Positions 27,781 through 59,038 of a stretch of DNA of 63,515 nucleotides are shown here, one piece after another. Position 1 is the stretch's first letter. Each line of letters opens with the position of its first letter. A program made the translations under genes and the position numbers. The notes under the pieces were generated by a model. It was not told where the DNA came from and ran no database searches. It saw nothing but the letters and a program-made list of their open reading frames with translations. Origin of the DNA: Oopsacas minuta (Eukaryota > Animalia > Porifera). The stretch is taken from contig JAKMXF010000039.1 of NCBI GenBank assembly GCA_024704765.1, positions 1 through 63,515 on the forward strand. Reading direction: 5' to 3'.

Positions 27781-28119
27781 GAAGAGTGGGCCAGCGTTAG
27801 AATGAAACTAAGCAAGAATGGCATTGGTTTTGCGTTTTGTACGATTTGCCAAGTTGATATTTGTATTTCTGGTGGTGGGAAACATGAAGTAGATCGTCAC
27901 CTAAAGACAGCGAAACATAAAAGTTTGTTAGGTCAAGTAGATGAACAACTTTCTATTTCTACTGCACTAGTGGCTGCAGCATCTTTGAGCCCCTTGAACA
28001 AACAAGTTATGTCAGCAGAAATATATTTCTCCTTATTTATCGCAGAACATAATTTGCCCTTCCTCGTCGCAGACCACTTCACTCATTTGACTAAAGTTAT
28101 GTTTCCTGTTAGCCACATT
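27781..28119 (+). repeat. Inverted copy (339 bp) of 23896-24234, ending at an N
   Basis: The translation EEWASVRMK...VMFPVSHI is identical to ORF 23371..24297, and the copy stops exactly at N28120. Confidence 0.9.
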
Positions 28120-32404: not shown

Positions 32405-32545
32405 CAGACTTACCAACCCTTCGTTGATAATTCCCTGGATTGAAATCTTAAAATCCCTGGATTTTTAACAATTTCCCTGGATTTACGGGCCCAATAATTG
32501 AATATATAAAATACACTTTATATTCTCCCATTTAGAATAATTCTA
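32405..32545. repeat. hAT terminus copy ending at N
   Basis: CAGACTTACCAACCCTTCGTTGATAATTCCCTGG... matches 21970-22097 and 40497-40648. Confidence 0.9.
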
Positions 32546-32945
32546 NCGGCTGATCAAGAGGTTCCGTCATTGTAAGTTATAATTTCAAAGATATATTGTG
32601 ATGATTGTAATGAGAAAACGAATCTGGGTTAGAACTAGATCATTTTCTATTTATGTCCGAGGATTGCAAATATCACACGTGACCACACCCTGTTTGCTAC
32701 ATTCCTCTTTACCAAATATAGCTCTAAGAGTATTTACTTCGTGTGTGTTTACTTAATACTCACTATAACAATCTTTAGAATTCATATCATTAAATGGATT
32801 CATGGAATCATGTCATCTAAAATTAGAATTATCTATCCAATTAAGACTTTCCGTGTGCAGAAATAATTCTTAGAAAATTGATTATTAACGTGTACTTAGA
32901 TTAAATTAATTAACTAATATCATATTAAATTGACCAATTAAATTA

Positions 32946-33021
32946 GGTGCGAATTGTCGGTGGTGCGAATTGTCGGTGGTGCGAATTGTCCGGTGCGAAT
33001 TGTCGTGGTGCGAATTGTCGG
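32946..33021. repeat. Tandem array of GGTGCGAATTGTC units (5 copies)
   Basis: Directly visible, with 14-16 bp period. Confidence 0.85.
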
Positions 33022-34520: not shown

Positions 34521-36525
34521 TAATGGAACCCACTTAACGGCCAACCCAGAATAGGAGCCAACTCGATTTACCGGCCACTTTTTAAAGTCCCGTTTAATAT
34601 ACTACAGACATTAATATTAATTTATTTCAGAATTCCGACCACTCCGCTATTCCGAATTATGGCCATACTTTTAGAACGAAACCCTATTTTAACCTCAAAA
34701 TTACGACCAATCTTAACAATAGGAATCACTATTGGATGTTTGAAAACGAGAACAATTTCTTGACAATTCAATAAGAATACATTGGATTATATACATATAA
34801 ATGCAAAGCAGATTAATGAGACAGTAATTCATACGTTATTAATGGCATCGAGCAAACGTAATGAGTTGGATCCCAAACAAAAAAGTGGAGTTAATTCATA
34901 ATTCTTCTGGACAATGGCATCGGCAATTGGCAATAAGATTCAATATAGGAAAACCCAAGTATCTTCCATACTTAAACGAAAAACAGAGTATTTGACCGCT
35001 TATGAGGAAAATCAAAGAGGAGACAGAAAGCGGCATTGCTATTCCAACGAATTTAATGTACTAGATACTGCTATGTGGGATTAGTTTCAATCTGCTCGTT
35101 CAAAAAACATACCCGTCTCCGGGCCCTTGATTCAAGAAAAGCTTTAGAATTCTCAGCAACTTTAAAGATTGGCGAATTTAAAGCTTTAAAGGGCTGGCTA
35201 AATCGTTTTAATAAACGTCATAATTTAGTGTGAAAAATAAGTGAAGAACGGAGATCAGTAGTGATACTACAGTGATAGAATGGAAGGAGAGATTGCCATC
35301 ATTAATTACAGGTTGTCAATTGCAAGATATATTCAACATAGACGAGACGGGCATATTAATCCGTACCCATCCAGACAAGACTATGCATGAGCGGGCTAAA
35401 AGATGTGCTGGAGGAAAATGCTCGAAAGATCGAGTGACTTGCTTACTTTGCGTTAATGCGTTGGGAGACTTTGAGCAGACATTAATTATTAGACATCTCT
35501 AAATCCCAGATGTTTTCAGTACATTCCATCTTTCATTTTCCCGTAACATATCGTGTAAATAAGAAAGCTTGGATGACTAGCGCACTGTACAATGAGTGGT
35601 TAAATGCTTTTAACGCCAAAATGCGTAATCAAAATCGGTATAACCTAGTGATTTTAGATAATGGATCATGTCACCAAGAGGAGCTTCTTTCACCAACATA
35701 AAATGAATATTCTTACCAGCAAATATCACTTTTGTTTTACAGCCATTCGATCAAGGTATTATCCAGTGTATGTAATTGCATTATAGAAAACGTCTTCCCC
35801 GTTGTGTGCTAAACGAGATCAATAATGGTTGTGGGACTGGAACAGTAGGGAAAAGCATTAACATCCTAGATGCTTGCCACTGGATAGCAGCTGCAGTAAA
35901 GGAAATACGTCCTAGTACAGTACAGAAATGTTTTCAAAATGTGGAATAAATTTGAATTTAGAAGATGATGCAGCAAATAACGAAGATGAAGAAATGCTAA
36001 CACTAACGAAATTGCTCAAGATTTACTCAGAGCAAAACATTTGTGATAATGTTATTGTTGATCCTCAATCATATGTCAACATGGATAGTGAAATTCAAGT
36101 TGATGACAATTTAGAATGAGAAAGGGAATCGTATATTCTAGAAAACTTCCAAGAAAATGAAACATAGGAATATCTCTCTGACGAAGGTGAACCAATTGAG
36201 CACCCAGAAACCGGATAATTTGCTTTCAGCGATGCTTTATCCTGGTTCACGAATCTCAAAGTATTCTTGAAAGATAAGTCAATGAGTGATTACCTTACTA
36301 TGATTCCTCTTTAGAAGATAGAGTTAACGAAAAGGCCATTTCGGAACGTTTTTAGAGAGCAACAATCAAAGTTAGATGCATATTTTAACTAATAATTATG
36401 TAATAGCATGTTATAAATATTATAGTATGGTAAATATTAATAGAATATAGTTTCTTTCAAAAGGTTTTACAATTACGGCCATTTTTCTCGGTCCTGAGGG
36501 TGACCGTATTTCCGGGGTTCTACTC
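34521..36525 (+). mobile_element. Tigger/pogo-like element, degenerate
   Basis: Termini TAATGGAACCCAC... and ...GGGGTTCTACTC|TA. CENP-B-like HTH fragments, DIFNIDETG, SKDRVTCLLCVNA, KKAWMTSALYNEWL..FN, LVILDNGSCH. Confidence 0.85.
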
Positions 36526-38498
36526 TATATGATATCATAAACAGAATTGATAAATCCTTTGAGTGACAACTGGGACGGTCAAATTCTAAAAGTCTTTGTA
36601 TAGAAAATTTGAATATTATCTGAAGAATCACAATAATTAAATTACGTCACCAAATAAAGAGAGGTTAATGTGATCATTTTTATAACACAGTGGGAAGTGA
36701 TGGAAACCTCTCAATATTTTGAGAACACAGAAATATCCCCTAGAGCGAGAATCTTGATATGTTAGAAGCATACCTTATCTATACTACGCAGTCATGCTAT
36801 ATTTCATAAAAGTAAACCTGTACCAAGTTCAACCCAAGGGCTTTCTCATAACATTGTGCCAAATCAGACTGAAAATGAATCTACCATGCTCAATGATGTA
36901 TAATCTACTTAATGAGCACCTCCAAGTCGATTAAACTTTTCACGACGCCACCGCCAGAAACCACACTGGAATTTCTTCCAATCATCTACTTGGGACGTCA
37001 TCGCGAGAAATCACACCAGAATCTTGCTAAACATACATGTAGACTCGAGAAACCCACATGAAATGTATTATCAGTTCATGATAAATGCTTTCTAAGAAAC
37101 CTATTTAATAACGTATACAATTCAAATGGCTTCACATTTTATCATTATGACGTCACTGCCACAAATCATAGTGACTATCAAGTTCAACTTCAAATTAGAT
37201 TCGAGATACACTCATATAATATTGTGAATTGTAAATTTATCCGAAATGCTCCCGAAATCGTAGAAGCAGGGTTATGAGAAACATAGGGTGCATGTTTTTT
37301 GAATACATAATAGTAACTAAATTTCACAACACATTTCCAGCATTCTGATAATAGTAATCATCTTGTTGCTTTGTGACCCTTTGGATTCCAAAGGGAAACT
37401 GTTGGAATACGCAAGTGGGAATAGGATGGGAAAGGGAATTGAAATTCAGTTCCTAGGGGAACCGTGGTGTGTACTGTGGAATGACACGCTGATCCTTCTA
37501 TAATTCTCCAAATGAACACGATTCAAAATTCATTAAAATTATCAAACTTGAGGAATTCACAAATCTGTATTCAGTTCTTCATGGAATTCAAATATTCGAG
37601 GCGATATTAAGATAACCTTGCTTCAATAAACGATTAAATTCTAGTTAGTCAGTATAATTGGGTTACAATATAATGGTAAATTCACCTTAGGGAAATATAT
37701 GCACAAAATATAATATCTACGCTCTCCAATCAGCAAACATCGATGATCCAGAATGGAATGAAAAATGAAAGACGAATGGTCCTAAAGCAACAACACTTAT
37801 TTATCAGAATGCTGAATGAGTGTTGTGAAAATTTAGTTACAATAAATGTAACAAAAACATCACCCTATGCCACTCATAACCCTACCTCTACGATCACCGA
37901 TAGCAATTCGGATCAATATAACATTCACTGGTAAAAAGGTTACGAGTATACCTCGAATCTACTATAAGTTGAACTAGATATTCAAATGTGATTTCAGGCG
38001 ATGATATGATAATGACGAAATGTGTAGCCATATTAATGATATAAGTTATCAAATATGTTCCTTAGGGTCGATTTAGCATACACTGATAAAGATTGAATGT
38101 GCATACATGGTGTCTAGATATAGGTTCAACCAGATATTCAAGGGTTATTTCTCGTGGTGACATCATGATAACAAAATGTGGAGCAATATGAATGAAGTTA
38201 TCAAATATGTTCCTTAATCCGATTTACTATACACTGATAATACACTGTATACTTCCCAGTGTTCTCGCGAGGCCTTTTGGGGGGGCGCAGCCACCCCTTA
38301 TTGTGATTATGCACCCCCCTATCGTGTCTAAATAGACATAGTGTACCCCTCTATCGTGGATAAACAATGTTATATATTCACCCAAAAAACGGGCCATCAT
38401 CTTTTTTTCCTTAAGGGTGTATTTTTACGCGTATTGTGCACAGAGTGTGTACGGCGCACCCCCCCTATTACATAATCCTGACGAGAACACTGATATTC

Positions 38499-38685
38499 CA
38501 GTGGTGTAGACAGGGTGGCGCAATTGGCGCTTTTGGGCCACCTCTAGTTTCTTTGCGCCAGGTAATGCACACTTGTTTTATGTTGCTCCAGGTAATGTCC
38601 CACAAGTGCTCCGATTTTGCGCCACTTATACCAATCAATGCGCCACCTATGCGCCAACACTAAGTCAATGCTAGCTACGCCACTG
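38499..38685. mobile_element. MITE with CAGTGGTGTAG / CTACGCCACTG termini
   Basis: Terminal inverted repeat and internal TGGCGCA/TGCGCCA motifs. No convincing TSD. Confidence 0.6.
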
Positions 38686-39388
38686 TGTACGTCTATCTCG
38701 AGAGTAAGTTGCTGATTATCTCGATTTTCAATTTGATCTCTTTTAGGGTCACTAACGGAATTGTGCATAACTCAAAAGGAAATTCTGTGGCGTAATTAAA
38801 ATTTCCCATAAAAAGAACTACTTAAAAGGAAAATGTACAACAACAAAAATTTACTACAACCAAAATGTTTTATTTGATAACATTCATTGTCCAATGATGA
38901 GACATAGAATTAATTAAGAAAAGTTCATTCCTCGCTAAGATATCAATACTAGAATTATGAATGACTTTGTTGAGCCAAGTTATGTTAGTTTGGAATGTAT
39001 CATATTAACATAAAGTACGTATGCTGTGTAACTATACCACATTTTCAATTATGCGATGTCCAGTTCATTGCCCAGTTATTTAATCATTACTGTCCAGGAA
39101 TGTCCAATATGTTTCTGAAATAATGGAAAATCTTCGATGAGCGCAAAGAATAAGAATTTTCACCTTGAAAATTTAATGGTGAATAGAAAAATGAACTATT
39201 CTTCTTTAACTGTGCATCTTGGGGGGCCAAAAACAAATTTCTACTGCATTGGTTTTGTACATTATGAGGTGAATTCCTGTCCCGATGAAGGCGCCTGAGA
39301 TGTGGCTATGTAAAAAAGCAACATGCCGGCGCCCTGTGGATTACTATGTAAGAAAGCAAAACAAATTTTAAAAATATATTTTTCTGAC

Positions 39389-39772
39389 CTTTTGCAAGTG
39401 CAAATGATTGAGGCCAGATACAACGTCTCTAATAACAGACATTAATTCGTCCTCAGATAATCCAAAACCATTCTCCGGATGATCAATGATATTGTATAAG
39501 CTACCACCTGTACATAACTCCATAATTATAACACGACGTTTACTAGAAAGTTCTGTTTCCATAGATATAAATTTCACGATATTATCGTGCATTGGAGTAT
39601 TTTTCAAAATGTCCAATTCTCTCCAGAAGGAATTAGTTTCCGTATTGAAAACCTTAATGGCAACAGAATTACCCGTTTTCATGTGGCGTCCTTTGAAAAC
39701 TCCACCAGTAGCCCCCTTGCCAAGAGAATCAATAGTATTCCAAAGATAATTATCCGATGAAGAATAATGCAT
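39389..39772 (-). CDS. TBK1: TBK1/IKK-epsilon family Ser/Thr kinase, first coding exon (128 codons, kinase N-lobe)
   Basis: MHYSSSDNYLWNTIDSLGKGATGGVFKGRHMKTGNSVAIKVFN...IMELCTGGSLYNIIDHPENGFGLSEDE...LNHLHLQK. Contains the Gly-rich loop, VAIK and the TBK1-typical 'ME.C.GGSLY...PEN.FGL.E.E'. Ends at a phase-0 donor (AAG|GTCAGA). Confidence 0.93.
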
Positions 39773-40496
39773 AGCTAAAAGAAATATTCAAGGGTTAAAT
39801 TACCTCAACATATTCATGGAAACCTGAATTCAAGGCAGTGCCAGTGCCTTAGAGTATAAGAGTGGTATAGGTCATGCAAATTTAAAAACGTATTCTGAGG
39901 TTTTCGATAGTGTTGATTAAAATTATGAAGTAATATGATAACCATGATTTATTAAATTTGCAAAAAATTGGCTTAATCAACCTTGTTGCCCCACTCTGCA
40001 TGTATTGCAATTTAGTGATGAACACATACATAGCACATACACATATGAATACGAATTGGATTCCAGATTATCCCGATAATATCATAGAGCACTTATGCGC
40101 GAGGGGTATGAAATTACGTGGGATCCATTCCAGTTATAAATAGGTACCATAGCTATACTAAATGCCATGATGTCCAACTTAATGTAGCACGTTAGCCCCA
40201 TTTTGCATCAATTTCCCCTTGCAAGCCAATTCTGTAAATCATTCATCACCTGAATTCAATGTTTAAATTTTAGCCTTGAATATAAAACTAGAGGACGTAA
40301 TTGGTTTTGCAGCAGAGTAACCCTTGCTGGGACAAAGCCTCTGCTTGAAAGTGTATCACAGACATCATGTAAGCTTGAGTTATCTATCCTTTAGCACTTG
40401 AAATCGCACCCTAAGATACTGACACTCATAAGTAATAACTGAATCTGAGTGATCTTGGTGGCTCTAAGTCTCTAACAGTATTGTCTTCACTATTAG

Positions 40497-40648
40497 CAGA
40501 CTTACCAGCCCTTCGTTGATAATTCCCTGGATTGAAATCTTAAAATCCCTGGATTTTTAACAATTTCCCTGGATTTACGGGCCCAATAATTGAATATATA
40601 AAATACACTTTATATTCTCCCATTTAGAATAATTCTAGTATTTATTAA
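40497..40648. repeat. hAT terminus preceded by TATTAG, ending at N
   Basis: CAGACTTACCAGCCCTTCG... overlaps 21970-22108. The flank TATTAG (40491-40496) recurs at 16915-16920. Confidence 0.9.
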
Positions 40649-40649
40649 N

Positions 40650-41546
40650 CATATCATCTGTCTCTTATACACATCTTATTCTATTTATGATCAGTTATGT
40701 GAATTTCTAGATCAGAAACATTTCTTCGAGACAGAAGAGTTTTCATCGATCTATTTCAAACTGAAATTAACTTATCTTACTGAAATCTTCTCTTACTATA
40801 ACCTGAGTAATCTTAAGTTGCAGGGAGATGGGATTTTTCTTCAAGCGGCTATAGAAAATGTGACTACATTTCAAAATAAGTTGAAATTCTTTCGTATACG
40901 TATACTGAGCAACCAATGGAACATGTTCCCACGTGTAGAAGCAATTCTTTCTCTTTCACCACATCTTAAAGATAAATTTACTCCCCTTATTGAAGAACAT
41001 TTGATGAATCTAGTTACTGATTTTTCCAATCGCCTTTCGGACGTTACATCAATCCCTAAATACCTGCTAACCCCGATGGATATGTCACTGGAAGATATGA
41101 TGAACTTAGAAGACATCCTGGTAGGCGAGTTGTTATATTTACAGGCAAATGAGGAGGCAAAAGCTAAATATTCTTGTGCTAACAAAACGAAATTCTGGTT
41201 TTTAGTGAAGGGGATAGCACCAAATCTTTTCAAAACAACTGAAAGTTTGCTTTTGCTTCCATTTCCACAACATATTTTTGTGAGAAAACAATTTCTTCAG
41301 CAAATTTTCTTAGGTCAAAACACCGCAGGCAACTTGACTTCAGGGAAGATTTAAGGATACCAGCATCAAGTTATAGTCCAGATATTTAAATATTAGCATC
41401 TAACAAGCAATTGCAAGGTTCGCATTAATTACTGTTAATTTGAATTAAAAAAAACTAATTTCAAATTATTTGGGGAGAGGGGGGGGCCAAAAGGGAGAGT
41501 AAACTTCATGGGGGGGGGGAAGGCTAGAAAAGGTTGAGAACCACTG
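40650..41546 (+). mobile_element. hAT (Charlie-like) element 3' part
   Basis: NLKLQG...AAIENVTTFQNKLKFF...LQANEEAK...FW...LLLPFP.TY.CE..FS. Terminus GGTTGAGAACCACTG. Confidence 0.8.
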
Positions 41547-42218
41547 CATTATATTATAGCATTTCATTTTGTGTATTGTAAGAGTAAGTAAATAAATTCA
41601 CAATGACATAGTTTTGTCATAAGAATTTCGTGGGGGGGGCCATGGCGCCCCTGGTCCTCCCCTTGGCTACGCCATTGTTGGCAATTGTACTAAGGAGTTG
41701 ACTATGCCTTTTGTCCTATTAGAGTACATAGAGTAGCATTATGTATATTGACTCAGAATGTAACATTATGCATAATACCTAGGCATTTGCAAAATGCGTC
41801 TACCAACGGATTTGTTCTCTCTATCCGGAGTTCTTATTAACCGGACTGGTACCAATTAAATAATCACTAAAATCTAAAGAATAACCTCTGAAACTTAATT
41901 TTGTGTATTTTATATTATTTATTCGTCATACCTTGAAGTCCTTATTATCGCAGTTCAACTACATGTTCATGTATGTATGCATGTGCAGTGTAAAATCAAG
42001 TTTTGTGTTATTTCAATAGCACCACCACACTCGCAATCACACCAAGTATTAGTTGATATCACTGTTTCAAAATAAAATTCTATAGAAACCAAGTTTGCCC
42101 CTGGCATGTAAGAGCCCGTTATTTATGCGTATGCCTGCTGTTTTATATTCGTATACTGTATATTTCAATTTTCAACTCTTATTATTACATTCCAATAATC
42201 ATTTAGAATTTGTTAAAC

Positions 42219-42427
42219 TAGGGCGTCCAATAAGTCCTGCGGGTGATATCATAGAATATGATACAAACACTACACACACTAATTCACTATAACATTAATT
42301 CAAAGTAATCCCCTCCTGCAGATACACAAAGTTTTAACCTTTCCACCGACTTGTAAAACACATTTCTGTACTCTTCTTCGGGGATGGATTTGAAGTAGTG
42401 GTACAGGCCCGTTCCGAGGGCTTATAA
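42219..42427 (-). mobile_element. Mariner 3' end, cut at N
   Basis: TIR TAGGGCGTCCAATAAGTCC. Minus strand GLYHYFKSIPEEEYRNVFYKSVERLKLCVSAGGDYFE. Confidence 0.8.
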
Positions 42428-45400
42428 NTTACTTGTTGAATCAGAATGAAATTACTAATTTCTAGGTTTGAAACGATTGTGAATTCAATGATAATAAGGA
42501 AATACAATTCTGAGGGGGTAAAAATTTCATGCTATTTCCAGCAAAAAGCCCACTGTGCTTTACTTCATGTATTGTTAAAAAGTCAATATTATATGGGGAT
42601 AAAGAATGTGATGAGATAGTAGTAGAGTCATATATTTATATACTGCAAATAAAATGTACAAATAAATACCGTCCGCCGTCTTAGTTTCTGAAGAAATTCA
42701 GGATGAGAAACAATGAATAAATTGTATATGGCGTAATGTCAACTAGTCAAAGTTTTCAAATATGGGTCAGAATATATACTAGTTTGATGATTCTATTGGT
42801 ATTAATCGTCAAACTTAAAATTTCAATTGATTATTTCATAAAGTATATAAAGAATAGATTGTGGTTTGTAATTGAATAATAATTCCAATGTAAATAATAT
42901 TATATTTAAAATGAATGATTGTGTTTCAATAGCAGGGTGGGATCGATATTCTGATAGCAGAAAATGAAGAATTAAGATTCGACAATAAATTAGATAGTAT
43001 ATTTCTCAATTTTGATGCTCCGAAAAATAGCAGTTTATCCGCTTGCTCCGCTCGTATATGCAATATATATTTATAATTCTGTATTTGTGACAAATATTCA
43101 GAAGTGGTAGACCTCTTATGCAAAATAGAATTTGCTTGTACCCGGCACGGAGAATCATCCCTGCTAGAATATCGCGAGCCGCCTACGCTCATATTCGGCT
43201 ACGGGCCATGTTGTCATCAACCTCAATAATACGACTGGGTGGTGTACATTTGGTCAATCTCTTTGGGAAGGGATGCAGCCATATATCAGCGCAATGGATC
43301 GAGAAAATAGGTCATTCAACTGGCAAAATAGATCATTTTGAGGAGAGGGAAACATATATAAGCGGGAGTAACAAATGGGGCATTTTAGAGATAATAGGCC
43401 TCATACGATTGAGGTTTACCTCCATAAGTGGGGAATCCAAAAAATATTAGATTGATTTGTATTATCAATTTTTGTGCGATATTAGGAGAGAAAATATATT
43501 CATGGCTATGATGAATAAACATTCCTGGTTTCTCGGAAGAAAATCTCTTGCAAATAGTAATATTCAAATATCATTGAAAAACTGTCGTTGGAGGAAAAGG
43601 ATATACACATTGACTGAAAAATTTCTGTTTAGTGGAAATTTAACTAAAAATTCTAAATGGGGAATGGGAGTAATCTGGAAATTCTACACCCAGAACTACC
43701 TCACAATTAGAGGCTCTACGCCGAGAGCTGATTTTGGATAGCGGGGGATTTCGGAACTGGAAGGAACATGTTCGAGCTATGGAGAAAAATTAGCACTTAT
43801 GACGAAATTATGACGTAATAGTCAACCTTTTGGGTTTTCAAAAATCTCATTATTAATTAGAAAACAGTTAAATAGACTTTCTTACCAAATTCATAATAGG
43901 GCAACATGAGTTTTACATTTGGCCGACGTAATTGTTCGATGCAAGAAATTTATGAAGAAAATTTTATACCCTTCATTTGTGCCTATAAATCTAGTCGAGT
44001 GTACTGTTGTATTCACAATATTTAGATTTCAAAGCTGTCCGCAGTGTGCCCCAAACGGGAAATAGAGAAACGCCAAAACTAAAATGCATCAATTTAGACA
44101 CTAGGCAATATATCCCCTGATATGCATCGAATTGATCATATGTATAAGCCCGAAAAGAAAGCTATTTGATTGAAGGATTAGTTTCAAAAATAAAGGTAAA
44201 TAGATGTGACGTCATCCCAACTTAACATCCCCAGAATTATCATGTATGAGCTCCAAATCTGAAGACACATGAGTTGTAATTTCCATGAATATCAAACATT
44301 AATAATATATAATACTCATAATTTAAACGACTTCGCAAATAAGAATTAAATGTAGACAGCGCGGACACTTTAGTGCCTCAGGTTAGTTTAAGTAATCAAA
44401 AACAAGATTTCTCGCTGCATTTGGTCTATACGCGGAGGGACATACTTGGCATTGCATGCTTTTAGTGAATAAAATAGCAGAAAACGAGATAATCAAAGGG
44501 TAAAAAATAATTTGTATATTAGCTGGCCGATAAAAACAATAATAACAAAAGAAATACAGCCTGCCTTGTGAGTTTCCGAAGAAATTCTACATGAGAAACA
44601 GGTGCCTTGTGTTCTGGTTCCCAGCCATTTGCTAGTCCAAATTTTTCAATGTCCCAAATAATCATCTAAGTCGAACTTATCGGCTTATACAGCGTAAGCA
44701 ATATCGATGATTATTCTGAATTTTCAAAACGTTATTTGTGCCGGACTCTAATGATTTTTGAGGAGAATAATTGGTCCAAAAACTATTGTATATAACTGAA
44801 AGTCATCTGAAATTCTTCTTGATATATAACATTACCCAACGTTATCCATCCTTGGCATTGAAACCAAAAGTCCTCTGAAATTTTTAGTTATATTTTATGA
44901 AATCTTGGAAAGAAAGATTTGTTGCAAAATATATTCCTGGGATCATTGATAATTTTGGCAAACATATAATAACAAGCACTAATTTAGATTCGTATGGCAG
45001 GATAATGTATATGTCGGGATCTAGCTCCTAAATTGTATCGACAAAATAATAAAAAGATCATTGAAGAAGGGGTCATTGGAGCGAGTTGCAATATAGATTG
45101 ACAGTAAAATCGGGATAATGTGCAAAAAATTCCAAAAGAGTGCGGACAAATTCATAATCATACTATAATACACTTGTTTGCAGCATTATTATTGTTTACA
45201 TACAACTTTGGAAAAACCGTATACCTAGATTCTATATTATTAGTTCAATACTTTTCGTGAATGCAAAAGAAAATATATTGTAATCGTATCAATACTTTTC
45301 GGATAGGAGAGGGTGTGTGACAATATTGTAGTCCTAGAAAATATCCTCGATTGGTAGGAACAATAACCATAGATTGGGCAAACTGATATCTAAATTTCAC

Positions 45401-45430
45401 AAATCAAACTGCAAGATATTAGAAACAAAC

Positions 45431-45689
45431 CTGTAATAACATGATAAAATGTAGCACCAATGCTCCAAAGGTCCACGTTTCTTGTAAAAGTCTTCCCTTT
45501 ATTCTTTCTTAAGACAGCTCGCTCGTACATATCCGGATGGAGATATTCTTCAGTACCATAGAGTGAAGTAAATGTATCAGTGGGATCTAATTGCCTAGCT
45601 GCACCAAAATCAACTAATTTATACACGTGGGATCCGTCCTCGACAATACATCGCATGATATTTCCAGGTTTTATATCACGGTGAATAAT
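45431..45689 (-). CDS. TBK1: TBK1/IKK-epsilon kinase, second coding exon (catalytic and activation loops)
   Basis: Acceptor tctttacatag| then [87 protein letters not shown], then donor G|GTTTGT. Phase 0 in, phase 1 out, 259 nt. [21 protein letters not shown] is the TBK1/IKKe signature, and the activation-loop Ser is kept. Confidence 0.95.
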
Positions 45690-46669
45690 CTATGTAAAGA
45701 ATTTGAATATAAAAACATAAAAAGAAGGTAGGTAACCCAAGGTAAGAAAAGAAAATCAGCAAGAGGGAAAAGGTCCAAAGAGTAAATGGAGCTTGGAAAA
45801 CTAAAAATGACAGAACATATTGATATTATAAGGAAGAAAATTACAAAATAGGTATGCAGTTTGGCACATAAGCAACAACAACAAAAGGAATTCAGAAAAT
45901 CCATAAACAGAGGAGAAAGAAAATTTCGAAGAACTAAGTAGAGTAGGGAGGATTGGGGATATAGTTGCCCCTATCATCGCACAAGATATTGCAGTGCTGT
46001 ATCAACTTGTTGGAATATTTTTTAAAATGAATAAGAAAAAATCCACAATACCGATTGTTGATAATTTCGTAGATTTATAGATGTACATGTAGTAATAATG
46101 AATAAAAATGATCAAGATTATAATATTCAGGAACACAGAATAGGTAATGCAGAAAGATGCCATTTTTGAAGTCAACAAACTAGCATTCCGATAATTTACT
46201 CTTTGACGAAAAGATTAGTGTGTATAGAAAAAGTGGATCAATTTGGGACTGAATTTGAATAGTATCAGTATATTCATTAGAATTTGGAAATATTTGAAAA
46301 TAGTTGGTGTTAAAGAACATAATTATAGACAATAGACGAATAAGCGTATTTCATATCAAGATCTTCATGTATAGATTCCAGGTTAGGAATTTACATATCC
46401 TAAACGTCCTAATGTAAAATGAGAGCTTTGGACATCGAGTTAACAATGGAGACTTAAAAAGTGAGTTCCATTTAATATAAGTCAAGTTAGAGCCTAGTGA
46501 ATAGACTGTGGGTTATTTGAGCACTTTACGGGAAGTAGATATGAAGTTAATATCTTAGCAGATGAAATCAAATGTTTATAGTAAATCTAGGATAAATAAT
46601 CAATTGGTACATCAGAATCCATCTACAAGCAGTATATTATATAGATAAGCATGAAATATTCTCCTAGAC

Positions 46670-46864
46670 CAGGGCTGTATCAACTCATTTTGAGTTGGCA
46701 AAATCAACTCATTTTTTTCTACCAACTCATTCAACTCATTTATTTCATCTAGCTTATGTAACCAACTCATTTCAACTCATTCAACTCATTCAACTCATAT
46801 CAACTCAATCAACTCATTTCAATTAATTCAACTCATTGAATATAATGAGTTGATACAAGCCGTG
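46670..46864. mobile_element. MITE filled with CAACTCATT tandem motifs
   Basis: TIRs CAGGGCTGTATCAACTCATT and AATGAGTTGATACAAGCCGTG, with about a dozen internal CAACTCA units. Confidence 0.75.
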
Positions 46865-46994
46865 ATGTAATACGCATCAAACTAGTCAAAGTCCCGATTC
46901 CCAACCCTGGTAATATGGCTGAAAGTGATTTTTATCAGTAAAATAGATTATAATTAGAGAGAAATATAGACTAAGAGTCAAGATAATCAACTCA

Positions 46995-47193
46995 TAAATG
47001 CACTCGGATAAGTAAAGTATTAGTAGTATTAGTCATCGCACTCTTCTGACGTTGTAACCAATGCTTTAGGGTAACGAACATCTCCAGAGTAGATATTTCT
47101 AAAGTAGCTCGATGAGGTCGACAAATCCGTCCTGCAATACTGAAGACTCGCTCATTTTCAGCAATTGATGGGGTTGGTAATAAATAAATTTCA
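46995..47193 (-). pseudogene. hAT dimerisation-domain fragment
   Basis: EIYLLPTPSIAENERVFSIAGRICRPHRATLEISTLEMFVTLK. Cut at N47194. Confidence 0.75.
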
Positions 47194-48955
47194 NGAACAT
47201 GCTCGAAAGAGCAAGTGTATAAAGCACTTTTGAGAGGATACAATGTTATTTTTGTCTGGTTTAATCATCCTGGGTTGTGTTAAATTGTGCAAAATGATAA
47301 TTCTGTTATTTTCACTAGCAATCATTGTGTTATTACATGTAATGTTTTGTTCTGCACAGCCAAAATTAGCCAAAATGACAATTACGGGTTGTTGTGTGCA
47401 TATGTCATATCTCAAAACGTGACGTGTTAGAAAAAATCTAAGGCCAGATTTGGATTCAGCATGGCCATATTAGGCTAGGTAAACTTGAAACGAGCAAGGA
47501 ATAAAAAATAAGTTGTAAAATGTTGTCCAGTGTTATTAGCAATAAAACAAAAATTTTAGCATCATTTCAAGTAATATGCAAAAAAGGTGTTAAAATATAA
47601 TAATTTATATAATAAATCTGTGAATTTATAACTCTCAGACTCTGAAATTCTCAAAATAGCTCTCTAAGCCCCCCAATTACCCCGACAACATGTTAAAACC
47701 TAATCTCTAGCTCGCTTTTGTATTACATAGGATGTTTGAAAATATGATCAATCACCAAAAGGTGTGAAATATTCACTTTAGAAAACATTCATACGCTAGG
47801 TGCAAATCTCCGACCAAAATGTATATGTAGGCCAATTTTCATGTTAATTGGACTGTTAGATTTCGCACGACGCAGGGATGGAAGCCGACCTCGCACATCG
47901 TCCATGTACGTTCATGCCATTAGGGAATCTCACTCTAGGAGCTGCGCTACTAACAGGGCTAATGACAGACTAACCGGACTCCTCAAGTGGAACTACATCA
48001 ATGGTAGTGTTGTAAGAAAGGGATTTTATCTAACCCTGGATTCACAGAATGTATATATTCAGTAATTGATTTGATTCATACTGTGTGGTTCTAACCTAGT
48101 CAGGGAATACTTATTTGGTTTAATTTACTGTCAGTATGCGACTTGTACTAGGACTCGTATCCTTGTGCAGTGCAGTAATAATTATAAATATCGTTAATCC
48201 TCCGCAACTACTTGCTCCCTTAAGGACAAGATCTTCGGATCCCTCCTGTCGAGAAATGGTCTTACATTGGATAGATGGTGTGTCTACATCGATGTATCCA
48301 TGGCACAGTGTGCAGTACTTTGGGTATATCATGAATCAAGCAGGTTGATGTTTCCACATAGTTTGATATATTTCAAGCTTGGATGCACTCCTGCTAGTTC
48401 GCGTGTTACCTTGCTTGGTTTCTCCAGTTAAAGTGAATCCTTAGGTTTGTTGGTTCTTGCTAGTTGGTGCTGGGGCTCTGGGGTTTTTAACTACGCTTTA
48501 GTAGAGTTTACCCCTAGCTTATATTTTTTCAGTGGGTACATGGTTGGTGGACTAGGGGATTGGTGTCTGAGGGTCGCGTATGGGCCGCTGGTTCGCCAAG
48601 CACAACTGCTCTTGCCCAGGTGGGCTTGTTCCACTGCTCATGTGTGTCTTCTGAAATGAGTTAAGTGGCGGCCTCCTTCAGTAACAAGTGAGGATGAATA
48701 ATTAAACAGCGGGAATATTAAAGAAACCAGCTTTAGGGCGATGTGCAATGGGAGCACCGGTGGTTGTTATTGCAACTAGGTCATCTGTGGATCCCTCCAG
48801 CAGCATTCTGGTATTATATGTTAAATGTGACTCCCTGATTCGGTACAGGTTTTGCATTCTTCCGGAAACTCCGTGATGTATCTGTCGTAGCATTCAAGAG
48901 GCATGGGAATTAACAAAATAGGTCAAAAGCTGCAATAAGCTAATTAGAAGATATA

Positions 48956-50230
48956 CAAGGGTGGGGCATAAGTTCTGTTCCATATTAAATAGGATATTTT
49001 TTATTCAAAACTATTCTGATTAAATTAAAACTTTCATAATCGTGTTTACTATATTGGTTGAATTTACATAATATCATCATGTTCGATATAGCTACCTTTC
49101 TTATAAATAGCAGCCTGAAGTCTGGGTCGGAATTGGGATACGGCGTGTCGGAAGTGATCCTGGGGGATTTTCAACCATTCTCGTTGCAAACAAGCTTTCA
49201 ATTAGCAAATACTCGTATGAGATACAGCGCAGGCTTTTTGCTCAAGAATGGAGCAGACACGATAATCAATGGGATTCAAATCTGGTTGGAAGGTGGCCAT
49301 TCTTTGGAAATAAAGTCGATTTTTTGGTCCCGAAATCACTGCTGAGTAGCATTAGCTGTGTGCGCTAGTGCACCATCTTGCTGGAAGGTCCAATTTGTGT
49401 TTCTAAAGTGTTTACGACTTGTAGCTTTCACTCCAGCATCCAATATCAGTTCTTGGTAAGTTTTATCATTAATTTTCACACCTGAAGGTACAAATATGAG
49501 ATTCGTCCTGAAATTTTCGGAGATACCAGGCCAAACCATGACTGAAGCGTGCTTTTGAGAGCTGGGAATAAATCGAAGGCAAAATCCTATCGTTTTGGTT
49601 ATTACTTACCTCTTCTATAGCAAATAGCTTCTTGTCAGTAAATAGTATGCGGTCCACAACTGAAAGCGCGGTACGCGATAACAGTAGTCGGAATCTTTGC
49701 TGCCTCTTTTCTCTAAGAGTCCTTATAAGCAAGGGAACCTTCCTTCTTTTGAGAGACATTAATCCTAGGTCACCATGCACAAGGCGTCTAAGCGATCTCG
49801 AGTTTACTCCAAAGTCTCTGGCCATTTTCGCATCGAACGTCGTGGATTTCGCCAAAATCTCTTCTTGACCTGTTGTTGCTGGCACTTAGTCCTAGTAGTA
49901 CGTTGAGGCCCACTTCTAGCTCTGTCTTGCATGCTTCCAGTTTCCCTATATCTTTTGAAAGCGCGATAGACAAATTTCTGGAAAACTTCATCTTCTTTGA
50001 GCGATGTACAAATTTCGGTTACAGATTTTCCCCCTTGAAATAGGCCTATATTTTCCGCTCTTTTGGCTTCCATAACAATAATATATAAATTATATAAGAT
50101 GATCCCAAATCGGTATGGCAATCAAATAGAGACATACCAATGTACTTTATGGGCTGATTTCATTCTAGTTAATCAATTATTAGCATGAAAAGTATATCAA
50201 ACTATGGGACAGAAATTATGCCCCACCCTG
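48956..50230 (-). mobile_element. Full-length degenerate Tc1-like element
   Basis: TA-flanked TIRs CAAGGGTGGGGCATAAGTTCTGTTCCATA and TATGGGACAGAAATTATGCCCCACCCTG. Transposase fragments KRYRETGSMQDRARSG, ILFTDKKLF, MVWPGIS, FQQDGALAHT. Confidence 0.9.
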
Positions 50231-51493
50231 TAGGGAACATTTAGGCAGGAAGACATCTTATGAAGAGAAATTAAGTGACTTTGTAAAAGACTCGCATCTA
50301 AAAGTAATCAAGTGAGTTTAGAATTTCGATCAAATTAAGATGTAAAAAATTTGGAGAAGAGAGTCACACTAAAACAGCGGGTCCCAACTTCGGGGTCGCG
50401 GGCCCCATAGGAGACGCGATTGCATTCCTTGGGTGTCATTTGATAGACTCACGCACTTACAGTATGCGTCGTACTAGATAATTTTAGGTGGTTGTAGCGA
50501 TAACGAGAGTCTTTGCTAAGGAAACAATTTTGGCTCCTCTACTGCCGTATCCCTGTCAAATTTGAGACATCAATCACTGGACATAACCCAATTTCCTCTA
50601 CACTTTGGGTGAAATATAAATTAATTGTTCAGGGAATCCATGGATGCAATAATTATGAGAATTTACGAACTACAAAAGTCTAGAATATATTAAATAATGT
50701 TCGATAATAGGTCTATGTTCGTGAAACACAGTTACCCTACTATCAGTGAAGTTCCTGGGATGTTGGCAGGTATGTACTGGTTCTCAGCTTGCCGAAGGGT
50801 AGTAGAAAGAAAAATTTTACATAATTTAGGAGCGGATCCAGGATATATCTAGGGAGGAGCGAGTGAGAAGACGATTGCAGGGATGGTCGTCCCTATAAAT
50901 TCGATTCTCAGATCTCCAGGTATCGATTTGTAACCATTCTTGGATCCATTAGAGTAGCGAATTCATACTCACATACATAGGCCTAGCTAGCATTTCACCT
51001 TTAGGTTTCTGGGGATTTAAGAAATACCAATGAGGTTACTGAAAGCTTAATAATACAGAGATTGCAATCTCCCTCAGTAATCCAGAGGTTGTTGACAATT
51101 GCAATGGGGTTACATGAAGCAGGAACCCATTACAGCAACCTAGATAAGCCATGCTGACAAATATTAATTAATTGCCAATAGAGTTGAAAAATATATCTTA
51201 TAACCTGGGTCTTCTCAAATTGTCTAGCAGTGGTAATGGGGTCCGAAGTGGACAATTAGAGAAGGACTACTGCATTATACATAAAGCACTCGTATTGGTT
51301 CTTTGACTACTTATCATAGACTCATTTGATAAGGACTGGAGGCAATAAAGACTCAAATCTTATGAGTTGTGATGAATTTGTAAAAATATGCAATCCATGT
51401 TTCCTTATGTATTTGCCAACTTTATCAAGTCAAACTCTAATAATTTGTGAAAATATCATTAGATCATTAAGTATGAATTCTGAATTCATATAT

Positions 51494-51784
51494 CAGGGCA
51501 TTCAATAAGTCTTGTGGGTCTTGATATATCTTAGGAATTAGTCAAGTAATATATCTAACTTTCATATATTATAAGCCCATACAGTTAAACTCCATATGCT
51601 GAAAGTTTCAAGCTTATTCAATACAAATTATGAATTTAAGAGATAGTTACATGCAGTCAATTTATACCCACTGTTGAATTTATGACTTCAAAGGATGATA
51701 ATTTCAACCTCAAATGGCGAGCTTACATAGAGTTTCGCACAATACTCAAGATCCAGCCCGTACAGATCTTCAGCGAGTTCCAGG
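51494..51784 (+). mobile_element. Mariner 5' end, cut at N
   Basis: TIR CAGGGCATTCAATAAGTC. ORF start MTSKDDNFNLKWRAYIEFRTILKIQPVQIFSEF. Confidence 0.75.
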
Positions 51785-52563
51785 NGAAACGTTGATTTAT
51801 TTCAGATGGCTATCATGTAAGAAGACAAAAAGACAGCCACTACCATAAAATAACAGGAAAAATTTAGGAAATACATAAAAATCGTTGACTTGTAGATGGA
51901 AAAAAAACTGGACGTACTGGAAAGAATCTGAAAGCAGATTTGAATTCAGCGTAAAAAACTAGCTTAGAAAATGTCAATATAATACTTGATGAGAAAATGA
52001 AGTTAAATTTTGTTGACCTGTGTAATTCATTGCAATAAAATTAGATTGGTTCAAACACTCAAATCCAATAGATCAATATATTTTGACTCACAGAGTTTTT
52101 GAGATATCACTTAAACGTTGGATCTTGTTCCTAGATGTATAATATTCCACAAACATTACAAATTTCAAGTAACTAACTCATTACAGTTCCTCAATCAATT
52201 CCAGACGAACAAAAAACCATCGACAAATTGATATATAGATATAACGTAAAGGGAAAATACAGCATACGCGAAATTCAAAATGGATAATTCAGAATCAACA
52301 ATTTGTATTACTACACCTTTGTTGAATTTAGAGCACCCTCAATTTTGAATTAGGATAAATCCTTACTTTATTGGCGCAAGTAAATTATTAAGATTGGAGC
52401 CAATGGGTTTGGGTCTCAGGACTTTAAAACAATATTAGTTGATAACGAGCAAAAACCTCTCTCACATTCGTATACCAGTGGTTACTATTTGATGGAGCAA
52501 ACATAGAATGTATTGAATATATTTCCCAGAAATGTTGTAGTATGTAAGAGATCAACAAATTAC

Positions 52564-52937
52564 CCTTTCTTTCAGTTGAGCAAACCAATTGGAACTTGTT
52601 GGTTTTGGGTCCAAGTATATCTTTAGAAATGATGAATTGAACAAGCAAAAAATACTGACACATTTCAATGATGTTATCAAACGTATTTGATCAATAAAAT
52701 CTGGGAACGTCATACAATTCTCGGGATTAGACTCTAAGATTCCAACAAGGATAGAAGATAAAAGTAGTCTAAAGTGAGCAAATGATGAGATGTAGTCGGG
52801 AAGACTTGTCTCCCAAAAGATTTTCCCATTTTGTTCATTTTGAGAGGCAGAAATAACTCCTGATCTCTTTTCACCAGTCATTCGAAACATTGTTTGTTGA
52901 TCCAAACGTCCCAAATATGGACGGAAAGGCAGCCTAC
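52564..52937 (-). CDS. TBK1: TBK1/IKK-epsilon kinase, third coding exon (kinase C-lobe end and start of the ubiquitin-like domain)
   Basis: Acceptor ttttcttttttgatatttgtttgcaatctag| with phase-1 entry: (G)RLPFRPYLGRLDQQTMFRMTGEKRSGVISASQNEQNGKIFW...LLSSILVGILESNPENCMTFPDFIDQI...SIFCLFNSSFLKIYLDPK. Aligns by eye with human TBK1 GSLPFRP...GKPSGAISGVQ...NGPIDW...LANILE...HVFSL...KIYI. The 3' end at donor AGG|GTAATT is less certain. Confidence 0.88.
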
Positions 52938-53095: not shown

Positions 53096-53606
53096 TAGGG
53101 CATTCAATAAGTTTCGCGGGTGATATCATAGAATATGATACAAACACTATACACACTAATTCACTATATTATCTATTCAAAGTAATCCCTTCCTGCAGAT
53201 ACACAAAGTTTTAACCTCTCCACCCACTTGTGAACACATTTTTGTACTCTCCTTTGGGGATGGATTTGAAGTACTGGTACAGGCCTGTTCTGAGTGCTTG
53301 TGATTTGCTAAAATATTTGCCTTGAAAGTGATTTTAAGCTTGGGGTATAGCCAAAATCACAAGGAGCTAGGTCAGGTTAGTATGGTGAATGGGAAGTAAT
53401 TCTAACCCCTCTGCATCCAAGAAATCTTTGGTTAGCTTAACTGTGGGGAATGTTGAAATCATCATACTTTGAATGCATAAATTGAACAGTAAGTATCAAT
53501 TGACTACACGTAACTATCTCAAAAATTCATAATTTGTATTGAATAAGCTTGAAACCTTCAGTATATAGAGTTTAACTATATGTGCTTATAATATATGAAA
53601 GTTAGA
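53096..53606 (-). mobile_element. Internally deleted mariner (same family as 42219 and 51494)
   Basis: 53097-53290 matches 42219-42427, and 53497-53606 is the reverse complement of 51552-51663. Confidence 0.8.
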
Positions 53607-54446
53607 TACCGTAAACTGGGGCTACTTTGGCCCACTAGGTTTGCTTTAGCCCAAATATTGAAATTTGCTTACGTATCGAATAGATATTGTATTTGTATTC
53701 GAAATTGTCTACCGATATTTGAAAATTCGTTAAAAATTCGGCAAGTCATTTTCAAGCATAATACTGAATCTAATCTAGTTTCTTCGAAACTTTGATATTT
53801 GGGCTAANGATTTAGTATATGTAAGTATAATTGTGGCGATAATACAGATTCATTTACCTATTTCCCCATTATGGCCATTTTGCCACACTGTGCATTATAT
53901 ACTATTATGATTTGGAAATACCTCTACAGGGAATTCTCCAGAATCCTATCAAAGGAACATATTACCGTAAAATATATGCATTTGTAAAGATAGAGATAAG
54001 AGATTAGGTGTATAAAGCAGAGCTTAAGTATACTACAGTTTTGTAATAGAAAAACCCATACCCTCATTCGAAGAGGTGAGTCTTCATTAATCAGAAAATG
54101 ATCTTACTTACAAGATAGAAGAGCTAATACAAAAAAACTATACTATTATTTTCATAGTTTAGTAGTATATCCTAGGGTAGATGCTGACATGTAGAATATA
54201 GCAACATCTACCTCAGAAAAGTACACATTATTATTATCATGCTATACGCCCAGGATTTCCGTGAGTATGGGAAAGGGAATCAATTTCTTGCTATAGGATA
54301 ACTAATGGGAATGCACATGAGGAAAACCCCTTGGAATTGTCATATGGGAAAACCTATGGGAATTCCATTGATGAAACCTTGGATTCCCATGTATTCTCTA
54401 TACCATCCCAAGTCATTCTCTTGAGGGAATTAATTCATATTTTCAG

Positions 54447-56650: not shown

Positions 56651-59038
56651 CACGATGTTATCGGGAATAATTCTATTTTGTCCTCAGATCTAAAATATCA
56701 TTTGTGAAATAACGCAGGTCAACACATTATCACTTATTATTCTCAAAAAGCAAAAATAGGCATTTTCTAGATTACTTTTTGTGCTGATTTCAAAACTGCC
56801 ATTCATTCCTCTCTAACAAGTATACATTTTTTATATTCTAGCTTGAAATTTTCGAATTCAATTTCGAAATATTACATATTATATTGTGCTTAATTAATGC
56901 TAAGAGTTGTTCAACTAACTAATGTTACTTATTATTAGAGTCTCAATGTGAATATTCAATAATGAATTGAGTATCAAATTAGAATCCAACTATCTTGCAA
57001 TAGGAAATTGAAAGATTTTCACATTTGTGAGACATATACGTTGAATAAACAAAAAGAAAAATTTTGAAGACGTCAAAAACGTTGAGAGTAAGAATTTCCT
57101 TTGTAAACTTTATTGGGTTCATCCCTGTATAACATCCAGTAATAGTCCGCCATCATTCTGTCATTCCAGAAACCTTGATAGTGATTTTCCATTCTGACAA
57201 TGCCTTGGTGAAATAGTTCGCCCTGTTCATCGCTTACAGCACCAAGGTTTTCTGGAAAGAAATCAAGATGGGAGTGGAAAAAGTGTAATTTCAATGACAT
57301 ACTGTATCACACGTTTTCATATGATTGAATTAAGTTTTCACTCCCTCTATATAATTTGTTGACTTCATATTACCCAAAAAGTTTTCACAAATCCATTAGA
57401 AAGATTTCCAAGTTGTGAATTCCTTAGCGGAAAGTATATTGTCAAACTCTTCATCTTTGAGAACTTCCCGAATTTGTGGTCCAATAAATACACCCTCTTT
57501 AAGCTTAGCATCACTTAGTTTGGGAAATTTCTCCACAATATAGCGAAATCCTGTAGAATTTGTTCTACCCATTGTTTGACGAAAGTTTTCATCAATCCAA
57601 GTTATATATGAAGTGGTGGCAAAACGATATTATTCGGATCTACTAATGGTGTATATTCAATATGGATGTTTCTACTCCATAATATGTTCTCTTGAGCCAA
57701 TCACGCTTTTTGTAATGATCTATTGTTGCACAACTGTCCCATAAACAAAGAAAGTAACAATATCTGGTAAATCCTTGTTGCAATCCTATTAACAGACCAA
57801 TGACCTTAAGATCCCACATATATTCCACCTGTGCTCTATATTTGATCGCAACCAAAACCTCTTCCAGGTTTATATAGGACTCTTAAAGATGTACAGAGTG
57901 AGCAATTGGAATCGCAGGATTTTTACTTCCGTTATGCAATAAAACGGCTTTCAAGCTACGTTTCGATGAATCAATATATAGACGCCAATCAGAAATGAAT
58001 GTTCCTGTGACAATCTAGAAAACAGACTTCAATATCGTTAGAATTACAGAGAGGACCATCAACTGTAAAATATTGAGCCAAATCAAAATTTGGTTTACGG
58101 TAGTGGGACATTATAACATTCTTGTTGAGTAAATTCTTTTGTTGAAGCTTTGATGCAAGAAAATTTGCCTTTTCTTTCGACAGATCAAGATCCTTGACAA
58201 GGTCATTCAATTCACCTTCTGTGAAGGTTTAGGGTGCTAAATTACTATCTTCAGGGACGTATTCTGAAGCAATAGAAGATTCGTTCATTGAATATGACAA
58301 AGTATCTCCATCATCAGAAAGAGAATCTAATCCCTATAACGTAGGAGTAGGGACAGGCAAGGAGACATCGTGAGAAACTGATCTGCGAGCAGATTCCGAA
58401 TCTGGGTAAATAATTTTATGTTGATTTTCATCGAAAACCCAGTTGTATTTACGATGCAAAAAAGCAATCATTGTAGTGATTCTTTGGTTCCCTCCAAACC
58501 ATTGGTAATGCAAAAAGCATTGAAGTTTTTCTTTTGTTCACCCAATCACGTAAGCCACTAGAACAAGCAGAACAAATCGCATGTGACGCCCACATCTTAT
58601 CTTGGTCACCTAAAGGGCAATCAAAATAGTGGCTATATACTCTCTTGAGGTCATTTGTTGTGGTACGTCGTGATTTTAAACAAAAGGAGCCACAAACATA
58701 GCAAAACTGTCTGGTGTATTGATACATTTACGATGCATTATGAAAGAACAGATTGATTGAATCAAAAAAGGGAAAGAATAGAGCTAGTAAAGTGGGATAT
58801 ATTGCATAAATAGACAAATTGTGTTACTTTGCTATTGTAAAATTTTAAAATATTTAGAATTATATTATTGAAAAATAATGGAATAATATGGTTGGATATT
58901 ATGAAAAAGCTACAAGTGATAGATGTAAACGGAGAGCAGATTTGAAATCTGGACAAAAAATCACGTTAGAAAATCATTTATGATCTGTGATGAAAAACAT
59001 TTGTAAATTTACATTACTCTCGCCAGTATCACGAAGTG
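56651..59038 (-). mobile_element. Chapaev3-type transposon with decayed transposase (57073-58745)
   Basis: N-terminal FCYVCG...YF.CPLGDQDK.W..HAICSAC...PMVWREPKNHYNDCFF; DLKVIGLLIGLQQGFTRYC.FLCLWDS; MSLKLHFFHSHLDFFPENLGAVSDEQGELFHQ...YQG.W...MMADY.W.L. Termini CAC...GTG; end positions are approximate. Confidence 0.85.

Follow-up and report, generated by a model that had tools for sequence, protein, structure and literature searches.

Reversed order of TBK1-like kinase exons in the published genome of the glass sponge Oopsacas minuta is most probably a mate-pair scaffolding artefact

In the draft genome of the glass sponge Oopsacas minuta, three minus-strand exons of a TBK1-like kinase gene stand in the reverse of the order in which they would be read, and we attribute this arrangement, with a probability of roughly 93%, to mate-pair scaffolding, the gene itself being ordinary and collinear. 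The window analysed here is an entire scaffold of 63.5 kb (JAKMXF010000039.1; 63,515 nucleotides), in which ten single Ns and one run of 666 Ns delimit twelve contigs (hereafter blocks) of 1.8 to 10 kb each. A first-pass annotation of this DNA had favoured blocks mis-ordered or flipped during scaffolding, a reading that now gains support from a library adapter, from the direction in which contigs overlap, from the same signature at other genes and from the published assembly pipeline. Our analysis supports a sharper form of it, in which the order of contigs is reversed and the strand of each is kept, which for the scaffold as a whole equals flipping each block in place. The exon order itself carries no biological novelty.

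The exons are real, consecutive pieces of one TBK1/IKK-epsilon-like kinase, with matching phases and GT/AG sites. Coding exon A (39389-39772, minus strand, block 6) begins with the ATG at 39772, closes with the motif LHLQK (39389-39403) and encodes the kinase N-lobe including the VAIK lysine. Coding exon B (45432-45689, minus strand, block 8) holds the HRD catalytic loop, within IIHRDIK (45669-45689), the DFG motif and the serine of the activation loop that corresponds to Ser172, and ends with HVIT (45432-45443). Coding exon C (52564-52937, minus strand, block 10) holds RLPFRP (52918-52935), completes the kinase C-lobe and probably begins the ubiquitin-like domain. Read directly from the DNA, exon A is followed by a GT donor at 39388-39387; exon B is preceded by a pyrimidine tract and AG, followed by GT, and ends in phase 1; and exon C lies between an AG acceptor and a GTAAT donor. 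The initial observation that three minus-strand exons splice together by phase and sequence was thus borne out when motifs, splice sites and phases were each checked.

Searches were made with each exon separately, and the best PDB match was TBK1 for all three. Exon A matched residues 4-129 of the solved human protein with an E value of 3e-31, well ahead of the next family of solved kinases (3e-13); exon B matched residues 133-218 (E about 1e-36), and exon C residues 221-334 (E 5e-12), ending inside the ubiquitin-like domain. The three exons cover, approximately, human TBK1 residues 1-132, 133-218 and 219-345, and the Pfam Pkinase model is divided between exon A (model positions 2-117) and exon B (119-191). 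The O. minuta exons share with vertebrate TBK1/IKK-epsilon (solved structures 4EUT, 4IM0 and 6NT9) a conserved LPFRP stretch, the serine of the activation loop and the motifs HRD and DFG. Each exon is single-copy across the 61,460,524-base, 365-contig assembly, where the next-best matches are other kinases at no more than 45% identity, and the first-pass statement that no second copy of any exon is visible therefore extends to all 61.5 Mb. Orthologues of exon B in relatives are 89-92% identical, share the same exon end and lie on public contigs of 0.3-1.2 Mb; no transcript fragment from the same species turned up in a word search made with this exon.

Unlike its vertebrate counterparts, the O. 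minuta copy was found for only about 345 residues. Neither the 63.5-kb window nor the assembly yielded a scaffold/dimerisation domain, a C-terminal adaptor-binding part or any further portion of the ubiquitin-like domain. Pfam TBK1_ULD gave no match on exon C and chance-level matches only across the whole assembly, as did TBK1_CCD1 (the coiled-coil scaffold/dimerisation domain), and Pfam identified no further TBK1 exon in ten minus-strand open reading frames of blocks 10-12. Short length, divergence or missing assembly could account for the 3' exons that escaped detection.

On the minus strand, the 5'-to-3' order of the exons rises with coordinate (A, B, C), and each exon occupies its own N-delimited block, both as first described; the Ns reported at 40649, 42428, 47194 and 51785 were likewise confirmed. 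They separate block 6 (32547-40648) from block 7 (40650-42427), block 7 from block 8, block 8 from block 9 and block 9 from block 10, respectively, and a further single N at 53808 separates blocks 10 and 11. Because block ends are truncated repeats, these Ns mark where contigs meet and do not stand for ambiguous bases. Nowhere does contiguous, gap-free DNA carry the permuted exon order; every step of it crosses at least one N.

The join between blocks 6 and 7 bears a physical trace of library construction. Nine base pairs to the right of N40649 lies an exact 19-mer of the Nextera (Tn5 mosaic-end) adapter (40658-40676, plus strand), the one exact match in the window against 0.01 expected by chance. 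Immediately right of the adapter the sequence enters the interior of a hAT-like repeat, T1, of which the 3' part is present (40677-41546, plus strand) and the left side is cut off by the adapter; eleven other copies of T1 continue upstream with conserved sequence that the window copy lacks. When a mate-pair fragment is circularised, its end comes to lie left of the adapter and its start to the right. The adapter and its chimeric right flank therefore identify the join as a circularisation junction, from which it follows that the start of block 7 lies upstream of the end of block 6 on the plus strand, opposite to the assembled order. The distance from the start of block 7 to the end of block 6 is about 9.9 kb if the blocks abut, and the direction agrees with that of the exons. 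Only one of the ten single-N joins of this scaffold carries an adapter. Across the whole assembly we counted 44 Nextera adapters against none for a control pattern, and gaps occurred within the 3-kb locus at 13 of 29 other adapter loci, compared with 0 of 50 background loci.

Overlaps between contigs point the same way. The right end of block 5 (32417-32545, plus strand) matches the first 129 bp of block 4 (21970-22098) with 100% identity, and the right end of block 6 (40509-40648, plus strand) matches block 4 equally well over its first 140 bp (21970-22109); these are the only exact end overlaps in the scaffold, and both belong to a 140-bp repeat, R1, present in three copies. In addition, block 3 opens with 130 bp (16244-16373, plus strand) that recur with 100% identity at 27651-27780, close to the right end of block 4. 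Each of these links (5 to 4, 6 to 4 and 4 to 3) leads back from a later to an earlier block. As a true adjacency the link from block 6 to block 4 is doubtful: past R1, block 4 differs from the 8 bp that follow N40649, and because the continuations diverge right after the repeat we treat this overlap as a shared repeat and an unproven adjacency.

The repeats themselves are neutral on order. The locus is dense in hAT, mariner-like and other repeats, some with copies 98-99.9% identical, and truncated elements flank both sides of N47194, where the repeat T2 ends at 47193 and a young 1.2-kb element, T3, begins at 47195 with its first 872 bp missing; block 10 closes on its right with a truncated foldback repeat. 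T1, T2, T3 and the foldback repeat all stop at block ends, and the sequence that follows in copies elsewhere in the genome is found at no other block end in the window, so that truncated repeats decide for neither order; sequence is missing at the joins under the assembled and the reversed order alike. The target-site duplication of T3 was considered as evidence and set aside, since the window copy is cut 872 bp in, at a contig start, and the left flank needed for the comparison is absent.

The signature of the TBK1 locus, with strand kept and order reversed, is shared by three other scaffolds. On C135 (plus strand), positions 2-83 of the myosin head model match at 5920-6241 and positions 135-282 at 634-1325; on C102 (plus strand), positions 178-442 of the biotin carboxylase model match at 25354-26151 and positions 2-178 at 35862-36392, both cases being read from model-match coordinates. 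On C17 (minus strand), the regulatory domain of a PARP (16703-16930) lies below its catalytic domain (20495-18632), and a Nextera adapter is found at 22045-22063. Every multi-exon copy that we found on long contigs (C111, C44, C299, C340, C88, C110, C311, C66 and C22; more than ten genes) is collinear. A scan of the ABCC family (TIGR00957) scored only intronless genes and is uninformative on exon order. The GC content of sampled assembly loci was 33-41%.

The published pipeline provides a plausible setting for such an error. The O. minuta draft genome comprises 365 scaffolds, about 61 Mb and 36% GC, figures with which the assembly searched here agrees, and its construction made use of a Nextera Mate Pair library, SPAdes, SSPACE (-n 15 -k 5 -a 0.7), pilon and GapFiller (PMC10280926). 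According to a preprint on scaffolding, taking a pair in the opposite orientation, as paired-end instead of mate-pair or the reverse, confuses the ordering of contigs, and valid scaffolding solutions preserve relative contig strand (bioRxiv 10.1101/025650). The case described there for stand-alone scaffolders resembles ours in that two contigs trade places with their strand kept, in that short contigs fitting within the library insert are affected, and in that a Nextera mate-pair library and SSPACE were used for O. minuta (bioRxiv 10.1101/025650; PMC10280926). It differs in that the O. minuta swap would be chained over a whole scaffold, with about twelve contigs fully reversed, and in that a junction adapter is retained at one join.

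We propose that contigs broke at transposon copies and that the scaffolder then chained them opposite to their true order, leaving each on its true strand and closing most joins with a single N. The cause was probably outward-facing Nextera mate pairs, with circularisation junctions, that SSPACE and GapFiller took as inward-facing or used untrimmed. For two contigs in the true order Y-X, a pair or junction read whose fragment opens at the start of Y and closes where X ends would mimic a short inward pair linking the far end of X to the beginning of Y, and this would yield X-N-Y with a gap estimate near zero. SSPACE writes a non-positive gap as a single N. Since the swap needs two neighbouring contigs together inside one mate-pair fragment, long contigs would be unaffected. 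Both the exact software cause and a reversal at every join of the scaffold are inferred. In the true gene, exons A (block 6), B (block 8) and C (block 10) would then follow one another, separated by transposon-filled introns of no less than 10.1 kb (between A and B) and 8.5 kb (between B and C). Introns of this corrected size are far above the genome mean of 341 bp (PMC10280926), an observation that counts against the artefact.

Other explanations would take the assembled order, or the separateness of its pieces, at face value. Transposon-mediated rearrangement could have shuffled the locus, leaving a real exon order and a broken, non-functional TBK1 gene, as might be imagined where near-identical hAT, mariner-like and other repeats are so tightly packed and where the 3' part of the gene was found in neither the window nor the assembly. 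Yet the reading frame is open in all of exons A, B and C, which also retain their catalytic motifs and splice sites; a clean strand-kept reversal with every breakpoint at an N is not what such shuffling is expected to leave behind; and the same clean reversal is seen at other genes. We regard this history as very improbable. The first-pass annotation had also raised the possibility of three tandem TBK1 paralogues, each left with its one assembled exon, and the region is indeed incompletely assembled, with repeats collapsed and sequence missing at each join. That proposal is contradicted by the exons themselves, which have no second copy anywhere in 61.5 Mb and are exactly complementary with matching phases, unlike three independent remnants, and by the 6.8 kb of block 6 downstream of exon A, which do not contain exon B; its chance of being correct is close to nil.

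A genuinely permuted exon order, with separate precursors trans-spliced or back-spliced into a functional TBK1 mRNA, had been put forward as well. It agrees with exons that are intact, single-copy, matched in phase and bounded by canonical splice sites, and the evidence for the collinear order is, for its part, indirect. Against it, each step of the permutation is a contig boundary, one of which carries a library adapter; the pattern strikes unrelated genes on fragmented scaffolds only, whereas paralogues on long contigs are collinear; and the assembly pipeline would suffice as a cause. We consider it extremely unlikely that the TBK1 order is real in this sense, and equally so that the TBK1, PARP, biotin carboxylase and myosin mRNAs of a glass sponge are all trans-spliced from permuted exon blocks, which, if true, would make exon scrambling a genome-wide system in this early-branching animal. 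Ciliate micronuclear genes, permuted tRNA genes and exon-scrambled circular RNAs resemble the present locus in having coding segments on one strand in an order unlike that of the product, but those systems are seen in contiguous DNA and with RNA or rearrangement evidence. In contrast to truly scrambled genes, every break in O. minuta TBK1 is an assembly gap, and the pattern tracks fragmentation, not gene identity.

Reversed contig chaining, the reading we prefer, bears on how this genome is used. The published reference of a key early-branching animal shows an apparent systematic scaffolding error in its fragmented, transposon-rich scaffolds, and 44 library adapters are left in it. Further strand-kept, reversed-order arrangements in this genome are best treated as instances of this error. 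Genes that lie across such joins, as TBK1, PARP, biotin carboxylase and myosin do, are unpredictable as single models. The annotation pipeline capped introns at 5 kb, and the headline result of the genome paper, in which TBK1 is not mentioned, was the loss of core metazoan genes (PMC10280926). Reversed joins in combination with that intron cap could inflate the counts of missing and truncated genes in a genome noted for such loss.

Three minus-strand coding exons, each in an N-delimited block of its own, make up the 5' part of a TBK1-like gene. Exon A (39772-39389, block 6) starts with an ATG at 39772 and is followed by GT, exon B (45689-45432, block 8) is preceded by a pyrimidine tract and AG, followed by GT and ends in phase 1, and exon C (52937-52564, block 10) lies between an AG and a GTAAT. 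When each exon was used as its own query in solved-structure and family searches, human TBK1 was the top structural match for all three: A aligned with residues 4-129 (E 3e-31; next family 3e-13), B with residues 133-218 (E about 1e-36) and C with residues 221-334 (E 5e-12), extending into the ubiquitin-like domain. In the Pfam Pkinase model, A covers positions 2-117 and B positions 119-191; the catalytic lysine, HRD, DFG and activation-loop serine are all found, and the exon-junction peptides are motifs conserved in TBK1 fragments from other animals (P0003, P0005 and P0006). The sequence itself is not human. Orthologues of exon B with 89-92% identity and an identical exon end occur on long public contigs. 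Pfam scans for TBK1_CCD1 and TBK1_ULD over the assembly, and minus-strand ORFs in blocks 10-12, did not yield the 3' part of the gene; its exons may lie in blocks 11-12 but be too short or divergent to detect, on another scaffold, or in unassembled sequence.

The first-pass annotation had described these as consecutive exons of one gene, in separate blocks and in the wrong order, and its description holds throughout. Splice sites, phases and adjoining TBK1 residue ranges agree, each exon is found once in the whole assembly (61,460,524 bases, 365 contigs), and A, B and C rise in coordinate (39772, 45689, 52937), opposite to what a minus-strand gene needs.

The window makes up all of contig C39 and contains ten single Ns and a 666-N run; these divide it into twelve blocks (1.8 to 10.2 kb) and represent contig boundaries that fall at repeats. 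Block 7 starts within a hAT-like element, all other copies of which extend further upstream; block 8 stops inside a repeat that runs at least 1.5 kb further in two other copies; and block 9 opens within a 1.2-kb element, 872 bp from its start. The joins lack sequence, and a single N is therefore not a one-base gap. The hAT-like family is represented at the start of block 7 by about 870 bp of its 3' part (40677-41546), which recurs at more than 30 other loci (L018-L045) with 86-95% identity; an internally deleted derivative (L052:2353-3270) adjoins another copy of a foldback (palindromic) short repeat found in the window at 17033-17273 and 53606-53806, the latter cut short by the right-hand end of block 10. 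Only the last 343 bp of the 1.2-kb element (47195-47537) remain in the window; its copies (L046:1129-2346 and five other loci) are 98-99.9% identical, so the element was probably active very recently. Block 4 ends in an inverted copy (27371-28119) of its own 23896-24643, 749 bp long and 99.5% identical; the inverted pair is either genuine or an artefact of collapse. The duplicated sequence is the 5' portion of a hAT-like element, its second copy is cut by N28120, and the 2.7-kb stretch between the copies holds an ISXO2-like transposase ORF (25990-26910). Much of block 11 is taken up by a minus-strand cysteine-rich ORF (58449-58727) and further open frames on to about 57076, which resemble the N-terminal portion of a large DNA-transposon protein.

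Evidence on block order comes from the joins themselves. The 19-nt Nextera (Tn5 mosaic-end) adapter has an exact match at 40658-40676, 9 bases right of N40649, against a chance expectation of 0.01. Immediately to its right begins an internal part of the hAT-like element, and the join of blocks 6 and 7 is therefore chimeric. When a Nextera mate-pair fragment is circularised, its end comes to lie before the junction adapter and its start after it. Because the adapter marks this junction, block 7 begins upstream of the point where block 6 ends on the plus strand, by about 9.9 kb if the blocks abut; this order is opposite to the assembled one and matches what the exon order requires. When all block ends were compared in either orientation, only two exact suffix-prefix overlaps emerged: the end of block 5 with the start of block 4 (129 bp), and the end of block 6 with that same start (140 bp). 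In addition, the first 130 bp of block 3 recur unchanged at 27651-27780, close to where block 4 ends. All three links (5 to 4, 6 to 4 and 4 to 3) lead backwards, from a higher-numbered block to a lower-numbered one. The 140-bp repeat R1 is found at the ends of blocks 5 and 6 and the start of block 4, and past it block 4 differs from the 8 bp following N40649; as R1 is a three-copy repeat, the overlaps support the reversed order, short of proof.

The same pattern recurs elsewhere in the assembly. The adapter 19-mer has 44 exact matches, against none for a control pattern, every one a single copy with genomic DNA on either side (e.g., C16:62777-62795, C17:22045-22063, and C321:914160-914178 and 914375-914393). 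Gaps occur in 13 of the 29 other adapter loci (3-kb locus), mostly <300 bp from the adapter, and Ns in 0 of 50 background loci (185 kb). Many adapters adjoin gaps; others lie within gap-free sequence, tandem repeats included, where they probably mark chimeric joins. In family scans of the assembly, from which gene order was read by coordinates only, three unrelated genes keep their strand with their blocks reversed: a myosin head on C135 (plus; positions 2-83 at 5920-6241, positions 135-282 at 634-1325), a biotin carboxylase on C102 (plus; positions 178-442 at 25354-26151, positions 2-178 at 35862-36392) and a PARP on C17 (minus), whose regulatory domain (16703-16930) lies below its catalytic domain (20495-18632), with the adapter at 22045-22063. 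Exon order inside each single block is collinear, as are all multi-exon myosin, carboxylase and PARP genes on long contigs (C111, C44, C299, C340, C88, C110, C311, C66 and C22). The strand-kept, reversed-block pattern is systematic in the assembly.

We consider the reversed TBK1 exon order an assembly artefact with a probability of about 0.93. The mis-ordering of blocks during scaffolding that the first-pass annotation favoured is borne out by the adapter at the block 6/7 join, the direction of the overlaps and the recurrence at three genes, whereas real exon scrambling in the genome, with transcripts joined by trans- or back-splicing, found no support and is very improbable. As a cause of the artefact, outward-facing mate pairs, or untrimmed junction reads, may have been misread as short inward-facing links: if the true order were Y then X, a fragment running from the start of Y to the end of X would link X's end to Y's start, and the estimated gap would be close to zero. 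For such a gap SSPACE writes a single N. The swap would be possible only where neighbouring contigs jointly fit inside one mate-pair fragment, and long contigs would therefore be unaffected; adjacent block pairs in the window sum to 6.5-16.2 kb. The Oopsacas minuta data comprise Illumina paired-end, Nextera Mate Pair and PacBio reads, assembled with SPAdes, followed by SSPACE (-x 0 -z 0 -k 5 -g 0 -a 0.7 -n 15 -p 0), pilon and GapFiller (PMC10280926). According to a scaffolding preprint (10.1101/025650), contig ordering is confused by pairs of opposite orientation, and relative strand is retained in valid solutions.

The published genome, about 61 Mb in 365 scaffolds with 36% GC, has 1.59 introns per gene (PMC10280926), in line with the many intronless genes in our family scans. 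C300:386341-389430, likewise without introns, is a single open frame of 1434 aa in which a kinase domain precedes a complete myosin head, a myosin-III-like architecture. Once the order is corrected, the TBK1-like introns span no less than 10.1 and 8.5 kb, which is unusually long for this genome, and are filled with transposons. Two tandem intronless ORFs (L008; C210:98356-100430 and C210:101767-102426) have open frames of 692 and 764 aa; because the first, the sole one checked, is closest to canonical IKK-alpha/beta (E 4e-53) and not TBK1, one or more IKK genes seem to accompany the TBK1-like gene in this sponge. The three exons belong to a genuine TBK1/IKK-epsilon-like gene in a glass sponge, and this gene is a new addition to a known family.
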